IMG/VR virus record: IMGVR_UViG_3300044846_005229
Span: 1-64,000 of that record
Direction: 5' to 3' (one strand)
Length of the DNA: 64,000 nt
Shown: one piece after another, positions 4,650-53,971 of the stretch
Position numbering within the stretch: position 1 is the stretch's first letter
Layout of the letters: every line of letters starts with the position of its first letter
Made by a program: the position numbers and the translations under genes
The notes under the pieces: generated by a model
The model's input: only the letters and a program-made list of their open reading frames with translations
Told to the model about the DNA's origin: nothing
Databases searched by the model: none

Positions 4650-6017
4650 TTAGACTCCTTCATAATACATATTGATATACTTACGTGCGTTCTGATTGCT
4701 GACTTTCTCCCATACCCCCCTTCTAAATGATTCTGCCGAATGTTGAATGCCGAATGTTGCTATATCTTTAGCCTCACTCTTCGTCAGTCCGTCTTTTTCC
4801 ATTTCTGTCATCACTTTATTGAAATTCCTTTCCAACACATCAGCTTGTTTGCCTGTCGGGTAATTTGTCATCGCGAAGTTAGTCCCTGTCCATCCACCTA
4901 AAGCTTCAGATAAGGCTGCTTTCCAGTTTTTCTGAGATAACCCCAAATCAACAAACCTGGCCACCCCCTTATCATCAATAATTAAATTATCGCCCTTAGC
5001 ATCATTGTGGGCATACCCTAGTTTATGCAATTTTCCCATAGTGATATTGTAAGCGTCATCTTTGTCAATGCCATTGATCTTTTGAGGGGCCTTGTAAAGG
5101 GGGACTCCTGGAACAACTTCCATAGCAATCATACCTTTGTGGATGGTACCGTTATCCATGTTGCTATGGGCATTCTTTACGAATCTGGAGGCTATTAATT
5201 TGGGGCCCAAACCGACTTCCCCCAGTTTTTTAATTAAGGTAGCCTCAGTTCTACCGATATCCCCAACCTTAACGCCAATTTCATTAGGCATTCCATCCGA
5301 GTATCCAAGTAACTTCTTCGTGGGTATCTTCAGGAATGCTCCATAGCCCCCTGCACCCAATACCCGGGAGCCTGATCCTTCAACTGCGCTCCACTTTACC
5401 TTATCTGCTTTCTCTGAGCCATCAATGCTTATAGTGCCTTCGGGGCCTAGCCTTTTCATTTTGTCTAATAACTTACTGGCGGCTTCTCTGACTTTTCTTA
5501 CCTTATCTGCAGGGATATCACCATTCTTATGGGTAGTCATTGGGGCTGAGGGCCGAGTCCGTGCCACAGTTTCTTTAGGGGTCTTAGGAACTGGTTGATT
5601 CTTTAGTTTCTTGGCAGCATTTATTCTGCCTATAAGGGTGCGAAACCTTTGAATGGCTTGGCCAAAAAATAGTCCCAAGTTGTGTTCTTTGTCTTGAGTT
5701 TGCTTATTTATTGGTGGTGAATTCTTTCCCGTAGGGGGGTTCTTAATTGGGGGATTTTGGACAGGGGTAAAGGCAACTGGTTTGGTAACACCAAAAATCC
5801 TGTCCCTTACTTTTATCAGAGAACCCACAACAACATCAGGCAACTCGATAAGACAAGTCTTCACCCCTTCGATACAAGTTGCTGAGCAGCTTTTACCGAT
5901 AGAGCACCTTTTACGACCACCCCCGACAGCATTTGATTTGGACTTCAGAATCTCAGAACTCGATGGCGCATTGCCGGAGGGTGCCGCAAAGTTGAATTGT
6001 CCTTCACCATTTACCAC
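4650..6017 (-). CDS. Cys4-module protein with C-terminal protein-kinase-like domain (kinase 1)
   Basis: N-terminal CSIGKSCSATCIEGVKTC; kinase motifs GAGGYG (Gly loop), GVKVG (Lys), HNDAKGDN (catalytic loop), FVDLG (DFG-like). Confidence 0.75.
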   Translation of the reverse strand: MVNGEGQFNFAAPSGNAPSSSEILKSKSNAVGGGRKRCSIGKSCSATCIEGVKTCLIELPDVVVGSLIKVRDRIFGVTKPVAFTPVQNPPIKNPPTGKNSPPINKQTQDKEHNLGLFFGQAIQRFRTLIGRINAAKKLKNQPVPKTPKETVARTRPSAPMTTHKNGDIPADKVRKVREAASKLLDKMKRLGPEGTISIDGSEKADKVKWSAVEGSGSRVLGAGGYGAFLKIPTKKLLGYSDGMPNEIGVKVGDIGRTEATLIKKLGEVGLGPKLIASRFVKNAHSNMDNGTIHKGMIAMEVVPGVPLYKAPQKINGIDKDDAYNITMGKLHKLGYAHNDAKGDNLIIDDKGVARFVDLGLSQKNWKAALSEALGGWTGTNFAMTNYPTGKQADVLERNFNKVMTEMEKDGLTKSEAKDIATFGIQHSAESFRRGVWEKVSNQNARKYINMYYEGV

Positions 6018-6407: not shown

Positions 6408-6600
6408 TTGACTTCCTCCCCGCCGTGAACGGCGGAGATTCCTTCTACGCTGCGCATGGGGATGCCTCAGCGATCGGGTGGGTTGGCGCTTCACAGCCTG
6501 CTGCCACCAAAGCGGTGGACTGATGCGTGGCTCCACGCCCGTTTCGACCCTCCGCCAGTCCGGCGGCGAGAATGTTCAAGGCAGCGTTGATGTCACGGTC
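6408..6600 (-). ncRNA. Predicted TnpB omegaRNA/reRNA scaffold (3' of tnpB to right end; guide is the flank AACCACATGATGCTTT...)
   Basis: Established for IS605 TnpB systems that the RNA overlaps the tnpB 3' end and right end; hairpins visible; 5' boundary is a guess. Confidence 0.55.
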
Positions 6601-7653
6601 GTGGACCGTTCCGCAGCTCGGGCACTGCCACTCCCGAATCGAAAGATCCTTCTTGCCGTCGTGATGCCCGCAGGTTGAGCACACCTGGCTGGTGGGGGGC
6701 CATCGGTTGATGACCACCACTTCACGCCCGTACTGCTCAGCCTTGGACTCCAGCAGGATCCGCAGCTGACGCCAGCCTGCATCGGCAATCGAGCGGGCCA
6801 GCTTCCTGTTCTTCAGCATCCCCGACACATTCAGGTCTTCCAGCACCACCGTTTGGTTCTCACGGATGAGGCGGGTCGAAAGCTGATGCTGATAGTCGAG
6901 GCGCCGATCGCCAACCTTGGCGTGCAGCTTGGCCACCTTGCGCCTGGCGATTACCAAGCGGTTGGAACCCCGTTGCTTGTGCTTCAGGTTGCGCTGTAGC
7001 CGCCGCAGTCGCTTGAGCGCAGAGCGCAGGAACTTCGGCGGGGCGAGCTTTTCACCGTCAGAAGTGACGGCGAGGGATACCAAGCCTAGGTCGATGCCAA
7101 CCGCCCTGCCATTCGCTGGCAAAGGAGTCGGCTCAATATCCACAACGAAGCTGGCGAAGAATCGCCCACTTGCATCGCGGATGACGGTGACGCTGCTCGG
7201 ATCCGAAGGCAGATCCCGGCTCCACTCAATCGGCACCGGGCCGATCTTGCTGAGCGTCAGCGTCCTCCCCCCTGTGCGGAACACATGGGACATGAAGCAA
7301 ACGGACTGCGCACCACGGCGCTTTTTGAAGCGTGGCGGCTTGACCTTCGCGCCCTTGCGCTTGCCTTTCAGGCTGGCCCACCAGTTGCGGTACGCCTGAT
7401 CGAGGTTGCGCACGGACTGCTGCAGCACCACATTGCTGGGCTCCGCCAGCCACTGCCGCTCTGGCGTCTGCTTGGCCTGCGTGATGCAGAGCTTGGCCAG
7501 GACGGGGTAGCTGGTCTTTTGCCCAGCGGCATACAGCTCACGGCTCTTGGCCAGGGCGTCGTTCCATACCACACGGGCGCAGCCGAACGCACGAGCCAGC
7601 GCCACCTGCTGATGCGGGTGGGGGTAGAGCCGGAAGCGGTAGCGTTGCTTCAT
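6445..7653 (-). CDS. tnpB: RNA-guided endonuclease TnpB
   Basis: MKQRYRFRLYP HTH start; RuvC-I GIDLG, RuvC-II VVLEDLNV, zinc finger CSTC/CPSC, RuvC-III HDRDINAA; all catalytic residues present. Confidence 0.95.
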   Translation of the reverse strand: MKQRYRFRLYPHPHQQVALARAFGCARVVWNDALAKSRELYAAGQKTSYPVLAKLCITQAKQTPERQWLAEPSNVVLQQSVRNLDQAYRNWWASLKGKRKGAKVKPPRFKKRRGAQSVCFMSHVFRTGGRTLTLSKIGPVPIEWSRDLPSDPSSVTVIRDASGRFFASFVVDIEPTPLPANGRAVGIDLGLVSLAVTSDGEKLAPPKFLRSALKRLRRLQRNLKHKQRGSNRLVIARRKVAKLHAKVGDRRLDYQHQLSTRLIRENQTVVLEDLNVSGMLKNRKLARSIADAGWRQLRILLESKAEQYGREVVVINRWPPTSQVCSTCGHHDGKKDLSIREWQCPSCGTVHDRDINAALNILAAGLAEGRNGRGATHQSTALVAAGCEAPTHPIAEASPCAA

Positions 7654-7682
7654 ACCAACCACCATACCAAACTTGGGGTGCA

Positions 7683-7949
7683 ATGGCGCAACCACCGCTT
7701 AGGCGAGGAAGGCACAGCGTTTCTCGGCTTGTCGTTCATTTGGTCTTTGTGGTCAAGTATCGGCGCAAGGCGCTGAGCGGGGCGGCATTGGATCGGATGC
7801 ACGAGGTCTGCCTGGGCATTGCCGAGCGGATGGGCTTCCAGCTGCTTGAGCTGAACGGCGAAGCAGACCATGTGCATCTGCTGGCGGGGCGCCCATCGAG
7901 CGTCTCAGGGAGTATGTGGAGTCTCAGGAAAAGCCGTCCTCAAGGACGG
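7683..7949 (+). pseudogene. tnpA: IS200-type Y1 transposase remnant (internal deletion plus frameshift)
   Basis: N-terminal ...HLVFVVKYRR...ADHVHLL (HUH) fused at ~7882/7883 to an out-of-frame C-terminal GGAPIERLREYVESQ (catalytic Tyr helix); the central part is missing. Confidence 0.85.
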
Positions 7950-7975
7950 GGTTTGTGTCCCAGAACAGCCCCGTT

Positions 7976-19009: not shown

Positions 19010-19411
19010 TCAGGTTAAAGGTAACCGCAAGCTAGGCAAGAATCCGAGGCATAGCCCCGAAACTTTATCATTCACTCTCCTGACACCAACAATATAGTTG
19101 GAAGAAAAATACTCACCGGGTTGTGGGATAACGTAGTTATACTTGACAATCTGCCAAATTGGAACCAGAAAAAATGCATGTTCCAGGTCTTCGATGCCCT
19201 TTACACACAATTTAGCCAGGAGTCTAGGGGTATAGAGCTGGCAGTAGGTTTCTACTTCTTGTACAGTCCCGACTTTATCGTAAAGATTAGCGGGGTCATC
19301 GATGCAACTGAGACCTTCCGATTCTAGTTGTTCTTTAAGTCTTAGTTGCTTTTGGCATTCGTATGTAAATGAGTCCACGAAAGTATCCTGGTCGTTTGTA
19401 TGTAAGTTCAT
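19010..19411 (-). CDS. Hypothetical protein
   Basis: 133-aa ORF overlapping helicase stop (ATGA-type). Confidence 0.55.
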   Translation of the reverse strand: MNLHTNDQDTFVDSFTYECQKQLRLKEQLESEGLSCIDDPANLYDKVGTVQEVETYCQLYTPRLLAKLCVKGIEDLEHAFFLVPIWQIVKYNYVIPQPGEYFSSNYIVGVRRVNDKVSGLCLGFLPSLRLPLT

Positions 19412-22355
19412 ACTTTTACCCCCTTCGCTTCAAACATTTTTTCGCAAGCTTCTTTCCTAAGAATTTCAGCCCTATCTGGTGAATAGCCCTCGTTTGCCAT
19501 CCATTTGTCTTGGCATTTAGCTTTGGGATCAAGGATCCTATTTTTGTAGACACCTTCGACTTCACCCAATAGCCCGATTGCCTCGCGGACTAGGTCCTCT
19601 TGGGCATAGCGGCAGTTTTCCCAGTTTTCGATGATGTAGGAAGCTTCGCCACCAATTTTAAAGCCATCCCTAAGGACTAACTTTTCAATCATCTCCTTGA
19701 TGATCATCAGGGAAGTTTTTTCTTTAGTTTCTTTCCTGGCGCCAGTAGTCTCATCAAAGAGCATTTCCCGGCCAAGTGAAATTGACTTCTTGACTGATTC
19801 CCACCTTAGCTCCCTGAATCCCTGATAGTAGTGAGTAGATGGCCTACCTACATTGCACCAGTTATCTTTAAGTAAAGGCATTAAGTGTTGGCAACTGGGG
19901 TCAACCCCCACAAAATAGAGGCTCTCTAAGTAATCATAGAGGACGTTGGGTGTCAATTCTGGCATTCTTTCATCTATGTTTCCTGTGCGGATAAAATGAG
20001 CAAACGCCATAGCATTGACTAGGGCCTGGGTAACATCAGCCTTGAATCGAATTCTTTGCCGAGTCGTCCAATAACGGACTTCAACTTGGAGGCGATTGAT
20101 GGTGGGATCGGAGTCGTCGTTGATGATGTCTAGGAACCTATCAGTACAAAGCCTTAAGCACCATAGATACAAAGCATCTTTGCTTACCCCTAGTTTTTCT
20201 TCGAGGAACGGTATATGAGACTTTGGCCTGAGGTCAGGGGTGCCTTCAGATACGGTGCCTTCCAGATTTTCCTTGTTTTTTGCTACCTCATATTCTCTGA
20301 ATGTGCTGATTAGCTTGATGCGGTCAATACCTTGTATTAAAGAAAGGTCGTTAATCTTTCCCCAGGGGTTTACCCTGCTGAATGTTACCATTCAGAGTAG
20401 ACTATATCTTCACCCTTCGTTTCCTTTAGGTTGGAAGGGGACACTCGTTTCGAGTCACTTGACCCTACTCCCTCTCGGGATAGCCGTTCGGCGTTTAGTA
20501 ATTTATCCAACTGGTAACTATACTTGAGACCTATTGAATAAATTCCATTTAGCACGGGATTGTCCTTATAGCAAGGAGTTCCCCCGTTTAGAGTGTGTTT
20601 TTTACTGAGCGTTACCGCCCAGGGGAACTAGAGAGTTAATCCCCGGATCGAGGTCATAAGCAAACTTACTATTCCAATCATTGGAGTTCAGGAGCATGAC
20701 GGTTTTTGGCCAGATTTGCTCTGAAGTTTGGAACTTGTCTTCTACTTGTAATACCATGTGTTCAAACGGTTTCGCTAATTCCGTCCCGGGATTTAACCCA
20801 GCTAAATGTTACCATTTAGAGCAGACTATATCATATTCCCTTAGGAATCTTCCCGTTTCGGATCGCTTGATCCTACTCTCTTTCGAGATAGTCGTTAGGC
20901 TTCGTATCCCCATGGTTTCATGCCTTTACAGCAGAAAACTCTGAAGATACCTTAGCACGGTAGGTTGCCCTTAAGTATCAAAGGGTATTCCCCGTTTAGA
21001 GAAGTTTTCTCTAGGACATTACTGACCTAGGGGGCTACTAGTTAACCCATTCGTAATCATAATCTTAGTCTCCTCAGCAGAAAGGAATTTCTTAAGAGAA
21101 GATAAGGATGTGTCGTCTTTATCCTATTGTTCGGTCAAACTTCGTTACAGTTCAACCCGAGGTTTCCCTCAGCTACAGGTTTCCCAGTAGAGCAGACTAT
21201 ATCTTCATCCCTACTTTCATAGGGAGCTTCGCGTTTCCCCTCACTTGAGGGTACGGAGTAAACTCCTAGTCGTTGAGCCTCTTTAACATGTTGGTACCAT
21301 ATTGAAGTTGGCTGCTGATTGCCCATTGTTTCATCCTCTAGGATTATTAGTTAGTGTTGAGCCAACTACCCGAGGCTCTTAGGGGTTTCCAGCAAATAGC
21401 GAAGTTTTACTTGCGCAAAAGTCTACGCAATGTCACTCATCGCAAAGGACTTAACACCAAATCGTTCTTCAGTGGACTTAAAAGTCCAGATCGAAAATCC
21501 GCATTTGGAAAAAGCAGCAGTCATACTGTTAAAGCATTCGGATTTCCCAAGTCCAGGGTCCTTACCAACTACAACCCCTGCCATACGGGCAGTATGTTGA
21601 ACTGCCTTGTCCTTACCTGGTGGGAGGTGATTAGATCTACCTACCCCAATCCTCCCAATAATTAGCTTGAGAATTTCTAACTCAGCTTCTGGAAAAATCG
21701 TAAATACATCCGACAATTTAACCTGACGAAGCACAGGATCGAACCAATCCCTGTCCGGGACCCAAATCCGGGGATTAGTTACAACAGTTCCCCCCAACCT
21801 GGCCATCGGATCAAACGTATGGGCAAAATCAAACTCTGGGTAGAAATTTTTCGATTGGCTGATTTTTTGCATCTTCAACAGACGGGCCGTAAAAGAAGCT
21901 AGATCGCTATCGCCTGGTTTCGGACGGTGTAGCGGCTCCCAGAAAGTTCGAACTTCATCTTCGCACAACCCAGGATAAAACACCTTCTCAATGTCTTCAA
22001 AATCTGCCATTTCGGTGATGTCTTGAAGTGGTTTGAAGGTATGGGGATACTTAATCCCTTTGACTTCCGGGGGGGCCGCAGGTTTTAGGATCCGGTGATT
22101 AACGTGGGGTGCCCCTTCTACGAGGTCTAGGATGTAACCCTTCGCCTTTAGTAGGGCAATACCCTTATTATACAACTCACTTACCCTGACAGGCTCTTTT
22201 TTCTTCTTACCTTTCTTGTCTTCGGAGTCTTTTGGATTCTCCCCCTCGTCTTTTTCTGAGGAAAAAACCCTAGCCTTCTTCAATTCTTGGGCTTGATTGA
22301 AAATGGCGATTTCTTGTTTGGTACTCCCTGTACCACCTGAATAGGGGTCTGGCAT
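19408..22355 (-). CDS. SF3 (D5/P4-alpha-like) DNA helicase, spliced: join(22355..21425, 21122..21045, 20753..20639, 20329..19408), 681 aa
   Basis: Exon 1 carries Walker A GKDPGLGKS; splicing restores Walker B (DIAYKDD), TNGLLQVEDKF, motif C (MLLNSN) and DPGIIDR. Exon lengths 931+78+115+922 = 2046 nt = 682 codons in frame. Confidence 0.85.
20330..20638 (-). ncRNA. Group I intron 3 (IA2-like, 309 nt, no ORF)
   Basis: P1 GGGGAU/GUUCCC with U.G at splice site; P3 ACACUC/GAGUGU; P7 GGCUA/UAGUC; P7.1 and P7.2 hairpins; J8/7 AAGAUAUAGUC; terminal G at 20330. Confidence 0.88.
20754..21044 (-). ncRNA. Group I intron 2 (IA2-like, 291 nt, no ORF)
   Basis: P1 GGGU/GCCC; P10 UAGUA/UAUUA; P3 CUUCUC/GGGAAG; P7 GACUA/UAGUC; P7.1 UCUC-GAAA-GAGA, P7.2 GGAUC-AAGC-GAUCC; terminal G at 20754. 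Confidence 0.9.
21123..21424 (-). ncRNA. Group I intron 1 (IA2-like, 302 nt, no endonuclease ORF)
   Basis: P1 UUGCGU/GCGCAA; P (UUUGCUGGAAA), Q (AAUCAGCAG), R (UCAACGACUA), S (AAGAUAUAGUC); P3 CUUCGC/GCGAAG; P7.1/P7.2; terminal G at 21123. Confidence 0.9.
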
Positions 22356-45094: not shown

Positions 45095-46292
45095 TTAATC
45101 CTTAGAGTAGTCTTTGACTCCGTCATACAAAATGTCGATAACTTTGGCAGCGTCCTTGTTTGATAGCTTGGCCCATGGGCCTTTCTCGTATGACTTCAGG
45201 GGCTGCCCAACCCGGGACACAATCATCTGGGTAATTTCGTTGTTAGAGATGCCGTGACTCCTGAGCGCGTCGTAGACTTTGGGTAAATTATCTCTCATTT
45301 TTAATAGATTTTGAGGGGCATCTCTCTTGATTGACCCTTTATACGTCCCCATTTGGGGGTCTGTTTTTGATCTATGGTCCCCAGAAGTCAAGGGATCGGT
45401 TTTTCTAAGGTCGAAAGTCGAACTTTTTGGCAAAAACGCTTTATTAGTAAAAACCCCTAGTGCTTCAGATAACGCGGCTTTAACGCTTTGCTGAGATAAG
45501 CCCATATCAACAAACCTGGACTTACCGTTTTTATCGATTAAGACATTATCTCTATGGGCATCATTGTGGGCTATTCCGAGTTTATGAATCCGTGATCTCA
45601 GGAACCAGTAAGCGTCCCCTATAGTGGTTTTTCCAACTTTGTCTGAAGACTTACTAAAGTTACCATAACTCTCACCTGGCACCAGGCCCATAACTATACG
45701 ACCATTTATGATGTAAACACCACCCTCTGCCTTTGGTTTGCCTTTGGCTATTTCCCCCATATATCAGTTTAGGGCCTAGACCGGCTTTCCCTAAGATTTG
45801 AGTTATTTCCGCTTCCGTTGTACTTACCTGGCCACGTTTAACGGCATAGCTCGGGTTTCCCTTTATCAAGAGCACAGTACCAAACCCACCTTCCCCTAAT
45901 TTGGTTCCTTTACTTAGGGACCCCGACCAGTCAAATTGATCCTTAGTACCATTAATGACCCTGCCTACCTTGAAACTAGAGTCAAAATCAGAAGCATCAT
46001 CTCTGGCCCATTGTGTGTTGCCAGTAATTATTTTTCCTGGCTTCTTGATTGACTCTTGATTTACTTTGGGTACAGATTTTGTGCTTGCTTTTGTGTTTGG
46101 TTCCACCCTCGCCAAGTAGTCTTCCAGACTTTCCTTGGCATCATCGATGAAACTAGCATCAATAGACCCGGATATACGGTCAATAGATTTAGATATGTCA
46201 TCCCCAAAATCAACCCTACAAACCTTTAGTCGGGCTATACATGTTGACCCGCATGATTTTCCTATATCACACCTATCCCCTTTACCAAACAC
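45095..46292 (-). pseudogene. Cys4-module protein kinase-like gene (kinase 2), split by +1 frameshift in G5 run at 45754-45758
   Basis: CDIGKSCGSTCIARLKVC, GEGGFG, AVKRG upstream; HNDAHRDN, FVDMG downstream. Deleting one G gives ...GPKLIYGEIAK... and a 398-aa ORF. Confidence 0.75.
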
Positions 46293-46296
46293 GGAC

Positions 46297-46731
46297 TCAG
46301 CCCCCGTTTAGTAAAGTCTCTAGTCTAGCGATTCGGTTTGATACTGTGTCTATCTTTTCGGAATACGACAATTCTTCACCCGTGGCGATTCGGTGATCAT
46401 CGGTATTCTTTCTGGCTAGGTCCAAGGTAGCCATCTTGGCATCAATGTCTTCGCGCTTCTTGACTAGTTCCTTAACTTGCTTCATTTGTTCTTGCAAGGA
46501 TTGAAACGCACCCCTCTGACGGGAGATTTTCATTTTCTCGTTTAGGGACTCTATTTGGCTGGTTAAATCCGTATGCTTTTTCCCAAGGTCTCCATACTCG
46601 CTATAACTAGGTCGAAGGCCCAGGACTACTGTAGGCTCCATTACGGTACCTTTGGCATAATCTGTGGGCTTATGGGAATAAGCTTGGATCGCCTTATCGT
46701 ATGCTTCTTTTGAGATTTTATCTTTTCTCAT
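46297..46731 (-). CDS. Coiled-coil hypothetical protein
   Basis: 144 aa; GGGTAAA 23 nt upstream. Confidence 0.6.
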   Translation of the reverse strand: MRKDKISKEAYDKAIQAYSHKPTDYAKGTVMEPTVVLGLRPSYSEYGDLGKKHTDLTSQIESLNEKMKISRQRGAFQSLQEQMKQVKELVKKREDIDAKMATLDLARKNTDDHRIATGEELSYSEKIDTVSNRIARLETLLNGG

Positions 46732-46760
46732 TTTAAGAGTCCATTATGTTTTCTTTTACC

Positions 46761-47151
46761 CTAATTGAAGTCGATGTTTTTTCTGGCCATAATGTCCATG
46801 GCTTCATTCCATTTAAATCGATTCGACCACCAGGAAGACGATGATGGTCCTTTAGCAATATTTTTTGCGTGACGGGCTTTGAATTTTTTACGCTTCATCT
46901 TCATGCGTTCAGATTCACCTTCTTTAGGTGACCCAGCGGTTTCTGCGCCCTTTTGGCCAAATTTTTTTCAATTCTTCCTCACCATCATGGCACCATTTGA
47001 CCACATGGCTTTTATCATCGCCAGGTTTTGTGGGGCGAGGTTTATTACAAGCCATTTTAGACTTATCGTAAGTCTCCCCAAACTGCTCAGCAAACATGTT
47101 ATAGAATGCCTCTAGGGCTTCATCGCTGAAATTTGCACTACCGTAAAGCAT
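46761..47151 (-). pseudogene. Basic conserved phage protein split by +1 frameshift in A7 run at 46962-46968
   Basis: Removing one A gives ...KSHVVKWCHDGEEELKKFGQKGAETAG...FKARHAKNIAKGPSSSSWWSNRFKW... (129 aa). Confidence 0.6.
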
Positions 47152-47567
47152 TACTCTTTCTCTCCATGTTTCAAATAGTCTGCAATTGCTGTTAAACTGT
47201 GGGAAGCTTCTGAAATTTTTGATGCTATCCAGGGGTCTGAGTTGCTATTGGGGGTGATCATTCCTAAGGAAGTGGCGATACTATCCTGCATTGATTTTAA
47301 CTGGGCAATTAGCATACCGCCATTAGGTTCGAAATCAGCGTCCCCTTCCCCCATGGTAAAAGTCGATGGTTTTGTGATGGGTTCTTTTTCCATACCAGGG
47401 GCAATGGCCATCTTATCCATTGGGGTAAGGTTGGGCTTTTGACCCCCTGATGCTTCACCAGATCTAGTCGCCCTGGAACCTTTAGCACCTTTGGCAGCAT
47501 TCTCCACAAAATTCAAGTCAAAGCCCAAACCTTGGAGACGTTTCCAATCGTACTCAGAAATAGTCAT
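47151..47567 (-). CDS. Hypothetical (candidate head-internal) protein
   Basis: N-terminus EYDWKRLQGLGFDLNFVE nearly identical to 48391..48891. Confidence 0.6.
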   Translation of the reverse strand: MTISEYDWKRLQGLGFDLNFVENAAKGAKGSRATRSGEASGGQKPNLTPMDKMAIAPGMEKEPITKPSTFTMGEGDADFEPNGGMLIAQLKSMQDSIATSLGMITPNSNSDPWIASKISEASHSLTAIADYLKHGEKE

Positions 47568-47657
47568 TTTATCTCAGGAAGTAATTAATGTTACCCTGTG
47601 CGCGACAAGGATGCAATGCCAGGGGGCTCAATTAACATAAAAAATACCGTGGGTCAC

Positions 47658-48377
47658 CTAGCGAGGCCACCATTTAAATAATTTCCGGAGCGGTGATGGC
47701 TGAATGAACCGTGTCCTCATAATTTCAGAAATCTCTAAGTATAGGCCCTCCAATGTGTCCTTATTGCTTTTTATTGTTAAATCAAATTTATTCCTCTCTT
47801 CAGTACCATACTGAACTGACAAGATTCCAATTGGCAAATTACCCACTTTAACCATCCTATTATAGAAACAGTCAATCCCATTCCTAGACAGATAGTCCTT
47901 ACAAGCTTGGGGCAACTCCTCACTAAATTTCACAGTCAACCAATCATTTTCCTTAATCATGGCTTCAATTTCCCTTATGAAACTGCCTATTTGAATATCC
48001 TTTACCGGAGAAGCCATAGCAGCGCTATCTTTAGCTGTGTAGGTATTGGTGGTGGACATTTTTTGGAGGTGGTACCCCGTAAAATCAACTTGTCCATTAT
48101 GGAAGGAACACAAAATAACCCTAGAAGCATTAGTTATGATACCAATTTGAGCCAAACAAGTGTTGATTTCCTTTTCTTTCTCGATATGATTTAGAAAGAC
48201 ATCCAGTTTATTTATAGTCCTAGGGGCAATCACCTTAGTAACAAGGGCCCAAAGGGCAAACCCAAGGAACAACACGGAATCGCCGGTAAAAGTGAAATTG
48301 ACTGGGGCTTGGGGGGCAGGTTGAGGAGCAGGTTGCGGAGCAGGGGCTCCTTGTCTGATATTGGTTAGAGTGGTCAT
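47658..48377 (-). CDS. Putative holin (single TM plus GAF-like domain, T4 T-like architecture)
   Basis: Likely start MTTLT at 48377; TM SVLFLGFALWALV; ASRVILCSFHNG...QKMS...GILSVQY GAF-like region. Confidence 0.4.
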   Translation of the reverse strand: MTTLTNIRQGAPAPQPAPQPAPQAPVNFTFTGDSVLFLGFALWALVTKVIAPRTINKLDVFLNHIEKEKEINTCLAQIGIITNASRVILCSFHNGQVDFTGYHLQKMSTTNTYTAKDSAAMASPVKDIQIGSFIREIEAMIKENDWLTVKFSEELPQACKDYLSRNGIDCFYNRMVKVGNLPIGILSVQYGTEERNKFDLTIKSNKDTLEGLYLEISEIMRTRFIQPSPLRKLFKWWPR

Positions 48378-48390
48378 AGAATTTGGTAAA

Positions 48391-48891
48391 TTATTTGGTT
48401 TGAGAGTGCTTTTTCCAAAGGTCGTTATCAGCCTGGCGAGCCTTACCAACTCCTGTAATAAATGAATTCACTCTGGCTAATGCCCATTGCTGCGGGGATA
48501 CTCCGGGTCGGTGGCCGGAACGCCATGCTGCGATCCCCCTACTGTATACTTCTCCCAGAATACTAGTAGAAATGCCAGACTTTTCCGATTTTGCTTTTAG
48601 TGCTTTGCTAGACCCCTCTGAATACTTATCATCGAAGGCTTTAGTTGCGGGGGATTCAGGGATTTTTTTGTTTCTTTTTCTGAACTTATCGTCAGATTCC
48701 CAATCTTTGTATAGGTCTTTGGGTGATACTCTAGGGTCTTTAGCCTTTTGCATTGTATCTTTGGCTTCTTCCTTGGCGATTGTTTGTTCCTTAGGGGTCA
48801 ATCCTTTTTTATACCTGGCGGGTAGGGCCATCTCTACAAACTGCAAATCAAAGCCAAGACCTTGTAGGCGGTTCCAGTCGTATTCCATCAA
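48391..48891 (-). CDS. DUF5824-like phage protein
   Basis: KSGISTSILGEVYSRGIAAWRSGHRPGVSPQQWALARVNSF. Confidence 0.6.
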   Translation of the reverse strand: MMEYDWNRLQGLGFDLQFVEMALPARYKKGLTPKEQTIAKEEAKDTMQKAKDPRVSPKDLYKDWESDDKFRKRNKKIPESPATKAFDDKYSEGSSKALKAKSEKSGISTSILGEVYSRGIAAWRSGHRPGVSPQQWALARVNSFITGVGKARQADNDLWKKHSQTK

Positions 48892-49604
48892 TTGCCATCC
48901 GGTAAACCACTACCACCATTTTCAAGCCTTTGCCTGACAGTTTCCGGTAAACCAGATTCCCATTTGTTTTTGATCGCGATGCGGATGATAGCAGCCATGA
49001 CTTTACGTGGATCAGCAGTGCGACCTACGGATGACCATGCAGCAGCGACATCTTGGGGACTGGCAATTGGGAAAGACATTCCGGGGCCTGCGAATTCCCC
49101 CTTTGTTTTTTCTGCCTTTAGTTTTTCCCTGGACTCAGCATCCCATTCCCTGAATTTTGCTGAATTGCCTGATTTCGCGTTACATGAGCTACATTTACAA
49201 TTACCCGATTGGCAAGACTTGCATCCGCCTTCTTTGAACGGTTGGGGGATTGACATCAGTTCAGTATCGTCTGCAAAATTATATTCTTTTCTTTTAAGTT
49301 CTTTGAAAGAATCCATTCTAGCTTTGCGGCGACCCATGATTTCCTTCATGGCATCAGCTCCGTCAGCGTGGCTATCATAGTCCCTATTGACTAGGTTGGC
49401 CCTCCGTTCTCTGATGGCCTTATTGCCCTTTAGAATAGCCTCCTTGTGCATCGACAAGCCACCTTCAGGAGTGGGGGACCATTTACGGCCGATTTTATTC
49501 CTTTTCATCAACTGATCAGTAGAAATGGCATTACTGGCATTTAACTGTCCCCCGACACCCGGCAAGAGTACAGAGGAGAAATCCATGTGTTCTCCGTAAG
49601 GCAT
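48888..49604 (-). CDS. Hypothetical protein with DUF6582-like C-terminal domain
   Basis: FAGPGMSFPIASPQDVAAAWSSVGR...IIRIA. Confidence 0.55.
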   Translation of the reverse strand: MPYGEHMDFSSVLLPGVGGQLNASNAISTDQLMKRNKIGRKWSPTPEGGLSMHKEAILKGNKAIRERRANLVNRDYDSHADGADAMKEIMGRRKARMDSFKELKRKEYNFADDTELMSIPQPFKEGGCKSCQSGNCKCSSCNAKSGNSAKFREWDAESREKLKAEKTKGEFAGPGMSFPIASPQDVAAAWSSVGRTADPRKVMAAIIRIAIKNKWESGLPETVRQRLENGGSGLPDGN

Positions 49605-49629
49605 AAGAGTAGTTAGAAACTTATTTCTT

Positions 49630-49950
49630 TTACCCTTTGCCTTCGGTATTTGTATCTGAGTTGCTATCTAAACTATTGTCCTTATTGTTTGACTTACCGG
49701 AACTCCCCCTGGCAGCCATTCCCAAAGCAGCAGCGGGTACTAGCAACGCTAAAAAGACATTGGCTGCGGATTTGGCAGTTTCGGAGAAACTATCGGATAT
49801 TCCTAAGCAAAAAGCTGAGTAGGAGTCATTTGGTGATTTCCTTAGGTTATTGCGGCACGATATATTTTCATACCCTATCATGGCAATTTGTGCTACAAAA
49901 ATAGCCACCAAAGCTTTAACTAAAAATGCCCTCTCGTTGAATTCTTTCAT
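49630..49950 (-). CDS. Small membrane protein (two hydrophobic segments, two Cys)
   Basis: 106 aa; GGGTAAA 24 nt upstream. Confidence 0.55.
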   Translation of the reverse strand: MKEFNERAFLVKALVAIFVAQIAMIGYENISCRNNLRKSPNDSYSAFCLGISDSFSETAKSAANVFLALLVPAAALGMAARGSSGKSNNKDNSLDSNSDTNTEGKG

Positions 49951-50000
49951 TGCCCTACAGCGAATCTACTTAGATTTACCCTTTGCTGACTGGTTAATTC

Positions 50001-50168
50001 TCAAAGATAGCGCATCCCTTCGATTACTTCGGGTGATACTTTACCTGAACTCTTTAATTCTTGGGCTGCCTTAAGGAGGGTTTGAGCCTTTCCTAAATCA
50101 GCAGGGTCTCTGCGGGCGACTTTATAAGCCCCCATTAATTTTTGGTATTTTTTATCGGATTCAGACAT
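50001..50168 (-). CDS. Small helical protein (55 aa), paralogue of 6027..6206
   Basis: Hand-translated MSESDKKYQKLMGAYKVARRDPADLGKAQTLL...MRYL; starts 11 nt after kinase 3 stop. Confidence 0.65.
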   Translation of the reverse strand: MSESDKKYQKLMGAYKVARRDPADLGKAQTLLKAAQELKSSGKVSPEVIEGMRYL

Positions 50169-50179
50169 TTTACTTGCCA

Positions 50180-51379
50180 TCAGACCCCATCATATAGAAG
50201 GTCAATGTATTTCTTAGCCTGTATGTCAGAGATTTTTGACCAGGATGAGTTGGTATTGAAATACTCATCTTTTTGCCTAATGTTGGTATTTTGAAATTTT
50301 CTAACGTCAGAATCTGACAAACTATCGGCTTTCATGGCTTCTACTACTGTTCTGATATTTGAACTAATTAAGTTAAAAATTTTTCCCCTACCATAGGCAT
50401 CCAATTGTCGTTCAGCTTCAAAGTCTGCCCCCGTCCTACTAGCACCACCTAAAGCCTCTGCAAGAGCTGCTTTACGGGAAACCTGGGCTAGCCCTAAGTC
50501 AACGAATCTTGCCACACCCTTACTATCAATCATCGTATTACCACCGTGGGTATCATTATGGGCTACACCCAACCTGTGAATTTTAGCCCTAGCTGTCCAG
50601 TAAGCGTCCCTTGTCTCTATGCCATTGACGACGTTGGGGGACTTGCCAAGCCGGGTCCCTTGTACCACCCCCATCGCGATTCTGCCTGTGGCCACCATGT
50701 ATTTTCCAGCCCCGAACTCTCCGTGCTGGGCAGCAATAAATTTAGGTCCCATGTTAGCTTTGCCGACAATCTTGAGAGCTTCTGCTTCATGGAGACCTAT
50801 TTCCCCAGCCTTAATACCTACATTCCTACCTAACGCACCGTTCGGAACTTTGAAGAACGCTCCAAACATGCCCTCACCCATTTGAACTGCATTAGGGTTA
50901 CCTACGGCGTTCCAATCAATGGATTTAGCTGCTTTACTACCGTCAACGTCCCTAAGTTTGAAACCAGGGGCGTCTATTACGTCGTAGACTTCTTTAGCTT
51001 TTGCGGGGAGGTTAACTACGGGGGCCTTAGCCGTGGGTTTTGCTACTTGGACTTCTGCTGCGGGCTTTGCCATGGGGGCCTTAGCCGCCGGAACCTTCGC
51101 TACCGGTTTTGCTACTTGGACTTCTGCTGCGGGGGGGCCCACTAGTGGTAACTTACGTTGGGCCAATATCTGATTAGCAACCTTAGTAATCACGGGGTTT
51201 AAAGCCCAAGGGATATCAACCATACAAACATGGTAGCCAGGGATACAGGACGCCCCGCAAGATTTACCCATCTTGCACTTTTTTTTCTTTAATTTAGGCA
51301 AATCAGAGCCACCTAGCCTAGCTATTTGGCCCCTCTTAGCGGCATTAATTTGAGCTTCTGTTCTTCCTAGGACTGCCAT
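50180..51379 (-). CDS. Cys4-module protein with protein-kinase-like domain (kinase 3)
   Basis: CKMGKSCGASCIPGYHVC; GEGMFG, GIKAG, HNDTHGGN, FVDLG; duplicated PAAEVQVAKP linker. Confidence 0.75.
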   Translation of the reverse strand: MAVLGRTEAQINAAKRGQIARLGGSDLPKLKKKKCKMGKSCGASCIPGYHVCMVDIPWALNPVITKVANQILAQRKLPLVGPPAAEVQVAKPVAKVPAAKAPMAKPAAEVQVAKPTAKAPVVNLPAKAKEVYDVIDAPGFKLRDVDGSKAAKSIDWNAVGNPNAVQMGEGMFGAFFKVPNGALGRNVGIKAGEIGLHEAEALKIVGKANMGPKFIAAQHGEFGAGKYMVATGRIAMGVVQGTRLGKSPNVVNGIETRDAYWTARAKIHRLGVAHNDTHGGNTMIDSKGVARFVDLGLAQVSRKAALAEALGGASRTGADFEAERQLDAYGRGKIFNLISSNIRTVVEAMKADSLSDSDVRKFQNTNIRQKDEYFNTNSSWSKISDIQAKKYIDLLYDGV

Positions 51380-51406: not shown

Positions 51407-52039
51407 TTACCCAATTTGCTCTTTGTCGTTGTATTCCCCGTCTTCATCTTCATCATCTTCATCATCATCGTCGTCCTCATCATCATTACCGTCTTCATCA
51501 CTACCTTCGCTAAGGATCTCATCGATTAGGGTATCAATTTCATCTTCATTTAGTTCTTCTTCCCCTTCGACTTCGGACTCCCCATAAGGGTCTTCTTCGT
51601 ATTGAGTTTCGTTGTCGTTGTCGTCAGAGTCACTTTCTGCGTCATCGTCAGAATCGCCCTCATCCGAACCCCAAATCTCTTCAGAAAGGCGTTCAAATTC
51701 TTCATCGGTTAGGAATGTTGAGTTTTCATCTGAATCTTTAATATCATCGGCATCTTCGGCATCGTCATCAACTTCACCGGCACCATCGTCTGGGCTAGCC
51801 GGAAAATAATCGTCGGGATTGAATGGCTGGTTGGGTTTAAAGTCACGGGACATACCATCATTAGCCTTCCAAAGCCCGGTATGCTGAATCCAGGGAGAGG
51901 TATTATGGACTACGTTAGTTGGCAACCCATTAATAGGGTCAATTTCGTGATCTTCAGGGTTTGACAATTGAGCTGCATAAGCTGCGCGGAAAGCTTCAAT
52001 GGCATCCTGTTCAAAATCGCCGTTGATTCTATTCGTCAT
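51407..52039 (-). CDS. Highly acidic protein (Asp/Glu-rich C-terminal half)
   Basis: DDEDDDDDEDDEDEDGEY tracts; N-terminal FEQDAIEAF. Confidence 0.65.
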   Translation of the reverse strand: MTNRINGDFEQDAIEAFRAAYAAQLSNPEDHEIDPINGLPTNVVHNTSPWIQHTGLWKANDGMSRDFKPNQPFNPDDYFPASPDDGAGEVDDDAEDADDIKDSDENSTFLTDEEFERLSEEIWGSDEGDSDDDAESDSDDNDNETQYEEDPYGESEVEGEEELNEDEIDTLIDEILSEGSDEDGNDDEDDDDDEDDEDEDGEYNDKEQIG

Positions 52040-53089: not shown

Positions 53090-53971
53090 TTATCTCAGTA
53101 AGTTCCCTTCCCTTAGAACAGACTCCACCAGTTCATATTCTGCTGGAAAAAGTTTTTTCATTTTGGGTCCAGCGAATATGTAACTTGAGAATAGCTCAGC
53201 ATAGTGCTCTAGTTGATTTGTTTTACTGTACGTGCTAACTCTTTTGAAGCTATCGGGAATTCCAACTTCTTTCGCTTTGAAGTGGGCGTGGTGCCCTAGT
53301 TCGTGAACTAATGTCACCAGTGTATTATTGCTGGCTGACCCTGGAGCTTTACCCATAGTATGTGGCAGTTCTTTACCTTGGGCGGCACTGGATAAATGCT
53401 TTTCGGCAGTGGCCTTGATTTTCTTTACTTGTGGGGTAAACCCTGGAGCTGACCGAATAACTGTGACCCCTTCTTTATACGCTAACCCGCCCCAAGTCTT
53501 ATTGTAGATTTTCTGCGAGATGGTGAAATCTGGGTTTTTGAAGTACCCCGAAAATGCGCTTCTGAAGGCTTCTTTGTTGCCTGCAATGTCCTTCCAGTCC
53601 ATGAATAGGGTCTTAGTCTTATTGAAAATCCTCTGGAGAACTTCTACTCTGCGAGGGGCGTCTGGGTCCAGGTTTTTTAAATCCCGGATGGCGCCCATGA
53701 TGGAGTTCCTGTTAAAGTCTATCTTTAGGTCGGGGTGAGCTTTTACTTCGCCACTTCTCATTAGCTTGATGAATTTCCCAAGGGAATCTGCAATATATGG
53801 GCTTAATTCAACTCTGCAAACTAAACCCCGTTGAATGCAAGTTGAGCGACAAGATTTCCCTAAAGAACATCTTTTCTTCCCGGACCCCCCCCATCTCTGG
53901 GGTGCGCCTAGGTGCTGAATAGTTCCAGCAATTGCAAAATCAAATTCTTTAGGGTTATCTATTTCGATCAT
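53090..53971 (-). CDS. Cys4-module protein with zincin metallopeptidase domain
   Basis: CSLGKSCRSTCIQRGLVC; HELGH (HExxH); STYSKTNQLEHYAELF (third ligand region). Confidence 0.75.
   Translation of the reverse strand: MIEIDNPKEFDFAIAGTIQHLGAPQRWGGSGKKRCSLGKSCRSTCIQRGLVCRVELSPYIADSLGKFIKLMRSGEVKAHPDLKIDFNRNSIMGAIRDLKNLDPDAPRRVEVLQRIFNKTKTLFMDWKDIAGNKEAFRSAFSGYFKNPDFTISQKIYNKTWGGLAYKEGVTVIRSAPGFTPQVKKIKATAEKHLSSAAQGKELPHTMGKAPGSASNNTLVTLVHELGHHAHFKAKEVGIPDSFKRVSTYSKTNQLEHYAELFSSYIFAGPKMKKLFPAEYELVESVLREGNLLR

Follow-up and report, generated by a model that had tools for sequence, protein, structure and literature searches.

We analysed a window of 64,000 nucleotides (positions 1 to 64,000 of the 110,489-bp IMG/VR virus record IMGVR_UViG_3300044846_005229) and found that its three paralogous kinase-like genes, here called A, B and C, probably encode new members of the virion-associated kinases of cyanophages, which would be loaded into the virion, injected and act on host targets. 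This reading, in which we have moderate confidence, builds on what was observed directly, namely the paralogy of the genes, their fold, their conserved catalytic residues, purifying selection, conservation of the lineages, a modular N-terminal cysteine tag, and the homology and synteny with Synechococcus phage S-CBWM1. From these, and from published reports of homologues in purified virions, we infer that the kinases of this phage are loaded into the virion, that the tag acts as the signal for this and that the substrates are proteins. The three genes are the following:

4650 to 6017, minus strand: kinase paralogue C, an intact open reading frame (ORF) of 455 amino acids (aa)
45095 to 46292, minus strand: kinase paralogue A, split into an N-terminal ORF (45672-46292, 206 aa) and a C-terminal ORF (45095-45760, 221 aa)
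50180 to 51379, minus strand: kinase paralogue B, an intact ORF of 399 aa

An earlier note on this DNA had described three paralogous kinase-like genes at these positions, and the analysis confirmed them, with pairwise identities of 33-37%. In a search within the 110-kb record, B matched C with an E value of 4.9e-51 and the two halves of A with 7.3e-23 and 1.1e-12. The Gly-rich loop, beta-3 Lys, alphaC Glu, HxD-x4-N and DxG elements were present in all three copies, as were the other details that the note had listed (HND-x4-N, D(L/M)G and a shared tail). In B these are the Gly loop at residues 168-173, Lys190, Glu198, the catalytic loop at 274-281 and D-L-G at 294-296, followed by a K-A-A-L-A-E-A-L-G helix at 303-311 and a C terminus of the form W..K..S...A.K.I..LY(D/E)GV. 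Residues G168, G170, K190, E198, H274, N275, D276, N281, D294 and G296 (B numbering) were invariant in 23 homologues. Copy C has its Gly loop at 221-226, Lys250, the catalytic loop H-N-D-A-K-G-D-N at 337-344, D-L-G at 357-359 and a C-terminal end of Y-E-G-V. For copy A, the locus given by the note is real, but it is not one ORF, being split at 45754-45758: the tag, linker and N-lobe are on the N-terminal ORF and the catalytic loop, D-M-G and tail on the C-terminal one. Where copy A was read as one protein, X was placed at the break.

The proteins share one plan: a module of about 60-75 residues at the N terminus is followed by a low-complexity linker that varies between copies, by a compact kinase core and, at the C terminus, by a small helical domain that ends in LY(D/E)G(V/I). 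The N-terminal module consists of a helix followed by a basic stretch and a four-cysteine hairpin, and it carries the tag C-x5-C-x3-C-x6-C around an invariant G-K, which heads A, B and C with strict spacing and was overlooked by the earlier note. B is laid out as an N-terminal helix (8-21), the cysteine tag (35-52, nucleotides 51224-51277), a linker (about 76-125) and the kinase domain (about 125-399), and the tag of C lies at residues 38-55 (nucleotides 5853-5906). The linker of B (51007-51150) is rich in Pro, Ala, Lys and Val, contains an internal near-repeat and is modelled as disordered, with a predicted local distance difference test (pLDDT) score of about 40; its length differs widely across orthologues and paralogues.

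The earlier note had proposed that the protein-kinase-like (PKL) fold be checked by AlphaFold and structural search, and the model of B bore the fold out. The model had a mean pLDDT of 80.9, with residues 125-399 mostly above 85, and showed a two-lobed PKL fold with a nucleotide cleft. In an exhaustive structural search the top match was RIO2 (Z 11.2), followed by RIO1 (10.1), WaaP (10.0), Bud32 (9.7), OspG (9.5) and NleH1 (9.3), and then by many protein kinases and APH enzymes with Z of 8-9 (APH 8.3-8.9), so that scores of 8-11 were spread over RIO, WaaP, Bud32, eukaryotic-type protein kinase and APH structures. In a Foldseek search of the Protein Data Bank (PDB), all 500 matches counted had E <= 0.001, and all of the matches listed were kinases or kinase-like proteins. 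A profile of the kinase family matched Ser/Thr kinases in the PDB with E 1e-7 and WbdD with 1e-5.

Comparisons with curated families gave only scores below their thresholds. Pkinase (PF00069) was the top Pfam match for all three copies, with 20.2 bits for C, 17.5 for B and 21.5 for the C-terminal half of A against a gathering threshold of 31.7. Weak matches to APH (PF01636, about 14 bits against 23.2) and to ABC1 were also observed. The Bud32/KEOPS model TIGR03724 was the top NCBIfam match for all three, yet its scores of 25.7, 21.2 and 24.6 bits were far from the cut-off of 125. The RIO1 Pfam model had no match at E <= 1, so that the kinship to RIO kinases is structural only, and kinase families in the PHROG scan reached at best E 0.04. 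The combination of an activation segment ending in APE and a full C-lobe, as in eukaryotic-type protein kinases, is lacking: no APE motif was found in the alignment, the D-(L/M)-G motif runs straight into a conserved K-A-A-L-(A/S)-E-A-L-G helix, and the best structural matches of B are themselves kinases without an activation loop. Because of this helix, the missing APE motif and the sub-threshold family scores, A, B and C are best described, on the model and the alignments, as complete, compact, atypical PKL-fold kinases that fall within none of the curated families. The compact core without an activation loop is common to the phage kinases and RIO1/RIO2, Bud32, OspG and NleH. In contrast to RIO2 and Bud32, the phage kinases lack the winged-helix domain of RIO2 and the Kae1 partner context, and the C-terminal helical domain and N-terminal tag are particular to the phage family. 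The catalytic loop reads H-N-D instead of H-R-D in A, B and C, and such a change suggests activity that does not need activation-loop phosphorylation.

The substrate is the point at which a different reading has to be weighed, namely that the enzymes resemble APH, choline kinase or WaaP in function and phosphorylate small molecules, such as a lipid, a sugar, an antibiotic-like compound or a nucleotide signal. The residue two positions after the catalytic Asp is His in A and B, and the resulting H-N-D-x-H-x-x-N loop resembles the Brenner-type loop of APH, ChoK and ABC1 kinases; small-molecule substrates are therefore possible. The sub-threshold APH and ABC1 matches, the lack of an activation segment or APE motif, the WaaP and APH structural scores close to those of protein kinases, and the annotation of S-CBWM1 homologues as APH-like and ChoK-like all point the same way. 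In copy C, however, the corresponding residue is Lys, a trait of Ser/Thr kinases. The family profile also fits Ser/Thr kinases best, Pkinase leads the Pfam matches of all three, and the structural search is headed by RIO-, Bud32-, OspG- and NleH-type proteins, which are protein kinases or ATPases, although the differences in Z are small. We thus regard small-molecule substrates as unlikely for the family; the question concerns the substrate alone, and such substrates would be compatible with delivery in the virion.

Relatives were collected by a word search, which gave 33, all metagenomic and several on contigs of 264-279 kb, and by a scan of viral contigs, which gave 55 loci, many contigs being represented two or three times. 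Three kinases each were found in a complete 279-kb genome, which is another assembly of the phage studied here, and in its 277-kb relative, and two in partial genomes. Several copies in one genome, called uncommon by the earlier note, turned out to be the rule in this phage group: three are conserved in two complete relatives of about 278 kb, between two and four occur on other contigs, and in the isolate S-CBWM1 a PknB-like kinase accompanies three tagged ones. A tandem array of four tagged kinase genes is found on a viral contig of 47 kb (IMGVR_UViG_3300034198_013392). In a quick maximum-likelihood tree (Shimodaira-Hasegawa-like approximate likelihood ratio support, midpoint root, five fragmentary or outlier rows excluded), A, B and C fell into three separate clades, each with 100% support and each with orthologues from other contigs. 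The duplication is thus old, A, B and C being ancient paralogues of a family specific to cyanophages, and all three lineages have been retained across related phages. The orthologues of C are 97-99% identical, and ratios of nonsynonymous to synonymous substitution rates (dN/dS) were 0.21 for B, 0.09-0.15 for C and 0.08-0.10 for both halves of A against its intact orthologues, showing that all three lineages are under purifying selection.

These data also bear on whether the proteins act as enzymes at all. They could instead be catalytically dead internal virion or scaffold proteins that merely retain a kinase-like fold, as might be suggested by the location of the genes in the structural region, by a tag shared with a structural protein and by the dispensability of one copy in this strain. 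Since every catalytic residue is invariant in the 23 homologues and dN/dS is 0.08-0.21, a pattern unexpected for a pseudokinase, we consider this very improbable.

The dispensable copy is A, in which a single site disrupts the frame:

45754 to 45758, minus strand: five-G run (C on the plus strand) with the +1 frame break of copy A, located by alignment to orthologues

The orthologues L009-L011 are one base shorter at this site (T-A-T-G-G-T-G-A-A), and the orthologues of A with 398 aa are intact. A strain about 97% identical (X9) likewise has one base fewer at 45754 and an intact frame. The five-G form was found again in two other assemblies (L012, L013), and two more lake samples, X5 and X6, yielded contigs with it; given this occurrence in independent assemblies and samples, a sequencing error was rejected. 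The shortness of the run and the intact orthologues make programmed frameshifting unlikely. The recurrence of the five-G form, the intact frames of X9 and the orthologues, and the low dN/dS of both halves indicate that the break is real, specific to certain strains and recent. In this strain, copy A has thus been inactivated or split very recently by a one-base insertion. One metatranscriptome contig from a related strain overlaps 45942-46400, an overlap that is no proof of transcription.

The best named relatives, by sequence and by viral fold, were kinases of the cyanophages S-CBWM1, S-H34/S-N03, S-CRM01, S-CREM2, S-B68 and S-TIM5. The family profile matched S-CBWM1 gp113, gp161 and gp162 with E values of 1.1e-36, 2.1e-20 and 8.7e-19, and S-CBWM1 kinases were recovered by fold in the BFVD database with 3.9e-11 to 6.8e-7. 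S-H34 gave the best viral fold match (2e-14), and tblastn searches against the T4-like cyanophage kinases gave E values of 2e-8 to 2e-13. S-CBWM1 gp113 (RIO-like), gp161 (ChoK-like) and gp162 (APH-like) are homologous to the window kinases, carry the same cysteine tag, occur in multiple copies and lie in a matching gene order. The window reads TerL, PhoH, the tagged gene P0034, small ORFs, kinase B, kinase A and tail fibres, and S-CBWM1 reads TerL, PhoH, the tagged gp106, small ORFs, the tagged kinase gp113 and baseplate wedge. The two phages differ in that S-CBWM1 is estuarine with a genome of 139 kb and the phage studied here is a freshwater phage of 279 kb, with kinase identity of only about 25-30% and TerL identity of 29%; the helical LY(D/E)GV tail is weak or absent in gp161 and gp162. 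The T4-like cyanophage kinases S-CRM01 gp130, S-CREM2 gp14 and 'PKN8' of S-H34/S-N03 have the same type of core, with an H-N/G-D-M-H-G-x-N loop and D-L-G. They differ in their length of 670-820 aa, a long and different N-terminal region, the lack of a cysteine tag and a single copy per genome.

The annotated starts of gp113 and gp161 (MG450654.1) lie 3' of an in-frame cysteine tag (L199:8375-8464 and L008:5809-5871), and both database entries probably lack N-terminal residues.

Kinases have been detected in the virions of S-CRM01, S-TIM5, S-CBWM1 (APH, ChoK and Rio2 kinases) and S-CREM2, according to the S-CREM2 paper (PMC10665884). These virion reports cover S-CRM01 gp130 and S-CREM2 gp14, the latter also labelled 'virion protein' in its database record, and none was found for the S-H34/S-N03 kinases. 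Because named homologues are reported in virions (PMC10665884), delivery together with the DNA is favoured over early expression. In this model, the kinases would be late products that are packed into the virion, a step in which the N-terminal tag may serve, and would enter the freshwater picocyanobacterial host along with the DNA. They would then phosphorylate host targets, most probably proteins, ahead of any phage gene expression, and the three diverged copies may cover different targets.

A scan for the central nine residues of the tag, a pattern that leaves the first and fourth cysteines free, gave 67 loci with 61 distinct ORFs, and in each ORF the tag was no more than 91 residues from the start. 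Of the 61 ORFs, 60 had the first cysteine and all had the fourth; in one kinase subgroup the first and third are both replaced and the second and fourth are kept. The kinase cluster accounted for 27 tagged ORFs, 20 with the catalytic-loop motif and the rest fragments or leader-only, and homologues of S-CBWM1 gp174/gp106 accounted for 14. Seven ORFs formed one 226-aa family without an assigned function, and several were singletons. Some tagged ORFs were leader-only, with 91-150 aa, also in related contigs. In a 145-aa ORF of this type, at about 223,092-223,499 of G001 (L138) and outside the window, tag and linker closely resemble those of kinase B and no recognisable cargo follows. Within S-CBWM1, the tag is carried by gp113, gp161, gp162, gp106 and gp174, of which gp174 is annotated as 'virion structural protein' and directly precedes the major capsid protein. 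The PknB-like gp173 is untagged and is absent from the virion kinases named.

The tag heads one further gene in the window:

53090 to 53971, minus strand: P0034, 293 aa, with the tag (nucleotides 53816-53869) and an M34-like zinc metallopeptidase domain, assigned by fold and alignment

In P0034, residues H223, E224, H227, H230, E255 and E259 (H-E-x-x-H plus Glu) are invariant. No Pfam, PHROG or NCBIfam match was found. The best fold matches of the P0034 model were anthrax lethal factor, in its catalytic domain (Z 10.8), and the Pro-Pro endopeptidases (Z 8.3-8.7), on which basis it is classed as an M34-like zincin.

A second kind of cargo was observed in P0028 of a related phage (L137:2444-3772, IMGVR_UViG_3300005662_000094), whose first 96 residues are 76% identical to the leader of kinase B and whose C-terminal domain is different. 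This domain was placed with ADP-ribosyltransferases by a protein-atlas feature search only (score 0.95, PF03496), and an R-S-E-type motif was read by eye; Pfam and PDB sequence searches gave no confirmation. The tagged gene beside P0028, which is P0033-like, carries another, unassigned cargo. An assignment of P0033 as lipid-kinase-like was dropped after a PDB sequence search of its cargo part came back empty, and Pfam found nothing in ten other tagged cargo proteins. Since P0028 combines a kinase-B-like leader with an ADP-ribosyltransferase-like domain and adjoins a P0033-like tagged gene, these sequences suggest cargo swapping behind a conserved leader.

Because kinases, a protease and an ADP-ribosyltransferase-like protein all bear the tag, and a virion structural protein does too, the tag may be a shared virion-loading signal for host-modifying enzymes. 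More broadly, and more tentatively, it could serve as a general signal for virion loading and co-injection of a swappable set of enzymes in S-CBWM1-like and related jumbo cyanophages; the cargo domains (kinases, M34-like protease, ADP-ribosyltransferase) would be exchanged behind the conserved leader and packed next to structural proteins. In T4, Alt and the internal proteins provide an analogy: enzymes of unrelated kinds, an ADP-ribosyltransferase among them, share a short N-terminal leader, are packaged in the head and are injected. The likeness lies in one leader heading kinases, a protease and an ADP-ribosyltransferase-like protein. The T4 leader differs in being about 10-20 residues long, in having no cysteines and in being cut by the prohead protease, and it has no sequence similarity to the cysteine tag.

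Several points weigh against virion loading and against the role given to the tag. The virion evidence is second-hand and comes from relatives only about 25-30% identical. The authors of the S-CREM2 work warn that abundant regulatory proteins might co-purify with virions (PMC10665884). The tag had no match to a known domain in Pfam, a protein-atlas feature search of residues 1-78 gave nothing usable, and model confidence for the tag was moderate to low, with a pLDDT of 50-77 in B and of less than 50 in P0034. The kinases S-CRM01 gp130, S-CREM2 gp14 and those of S-H34 have no cysteine tag, and the tag is therefore not required for virion association in general. Nearly all genes of the window are on one strand, so the position of the kinases among structural genes is weak evidence for their timing. 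No curated kinase family threshold was reached in the Pfam and NCBIfam scans, and the His of A and B leaves room for small-molecule substrates, as described above.

An alternative is that the kinases are intracellular host-takeover enzymes made after infection and not virion cargo, with the N-terminal module as a zinc knuckle or docking domain that localises them to DNA, RNA, a membrane or a host complex. The basic stretch with four cysteines would suit a nucleic-acid-binding knuckle, and the S-CREM2 caveat on co-purification applies here too. The T7 kinase, an early protein, phosphorylates many host proteins and disarms defences, according to a preprint (bioRxiv 10.1101/2024.12.20.629319). 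The earlier note had compared the window kinases with T7 gp0.7, and the comparison stands as a functional analogy, in that both are phage-encoded kinases, that of T7 acting on host proteins. No sequence or fold kinship beyond the general fold was detected. In addition to the poor PHROG scores given above, the T7-type kinase was absent from the best 50 BFVD fold matches. T7 gp0.7 is an early gene and untagged, whereas the window kinases are tagged and lie in the structural region, where packaging and tail genes surround them, with terminase/PhoH on one side and the tail fibres on the other. The reports of homologues in virions of four different cyanophages (PMC10665884) and the tag on gp174 next to a capsid gene also speak against this alternative. 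We therefore regard host takeover by newly made kinases as rather doubtful and retain virion-delivered kinases as the preferred reading. The interpretation given by the earlier note is thus partly supported.

The genome and habitat of the phage were further characterized. Another assembly of the same phage is a contig of 279,339 bp that has direct terminal repeats and a completeness rating of 100%. Runs holding its sequence are lake-water metagenomes, and the habitat is thus a lake and not the sea. A near-identity DNA search against phage records gave 0 matches, and the nearest isolate by TerL was S-CBWM1. Genes for ribonucleotide reductase, primase, a polymerase/exonuclease, PhoH and terminase lie in the window, as do those for very large tail-fibre proteins. 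A mobile element gives information on the host:

6408 to 7972, minus strand: tnpB-only IS200/IS605-type insertion of about 1,565 bp, with the TnpB ORF at 6445-7695 (Pfam OrfB_IS605, Cas12f1-like TNB and helix-turn-helix)

The element lies 390 bp upstream of kinase C, has a guanine-plus-cytosine content of 58.7% and is context, outside the kinase system. It is missing from five related phage contigs, in which the flanks are contiguous, and it is 84-86% identical to multi-copy TnpB genes of freshwater (Lake Mendota) Prochlorococcaceae metagenome-assembled genomes (MAGs). Judging from these comparisons, the insertion represents a recent host-to-phage transfer and serves as a host marker. Because of its identity to the Prochlorococcaceae copies, the host of the phage is taken to be a freshwater picocyanobacterium, in agreement with the cyanobacterial host assumed in the earlier note. 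A host origin of the kinases themselves was unsupported, as a search of five putative host MAGs, themselves possibly incomplete, found no homologue at E <= 0.01.

Other features of the window were also noted. Directly upstream of kinase B, a 210-aa, extremely acidic protein with long Asp/Glu runs is encoded at 51407-52039 on the minus strand and has no family match. The neighbouring ORFs at 47151-47567 and 48391-48891 (minus strand) share another N-terminal motif, E-Y-D-W-x-R-L-Q-G-L-G-F-D-L. The latter ORF contains a DUF5824 domain, and this domain corresponds to the C-terminal part of PHROG 3041 'cytidyltransferase'; cytidylyltransferase/NMNAT-like proteins have been reported in cyanophage virions (S-CREM2 paper, PMC10665884). 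Three group I introns (Rfam RF00028, 58-83 bits) were found on the minus strand at 20378-20648, 20802-21054 and 21173-21454. They separate the ORFs 19408-20391 and 21423-22355, which match the C- and N-terminal halves of one DNA primase family, and the primase gene thus appears, from this arrangement, to be interrupted three times.

Virion kinases recur in cyanophage proteomes, and the locus described here gives a definition of the family, with tag, linker, minimal kinase and helical tail, and shows that large freshwater cyanophages maintain two to four diverged copies of it under purifying selection. The tag, which is short and also heads a protease, an ADP-ribosyltransferase-like protein and a structural protein of the virion, provides a testable handle. 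If it is not a loading signal, the kinases would be ordinary additions to a known group. If it is, it would explain how enzymes that act before phage gene expression are delivered, and injected effectors would become predictable from sequence; the tag and its cargo would then be a phage counterpart of a secretion signal with its effector repertoire.

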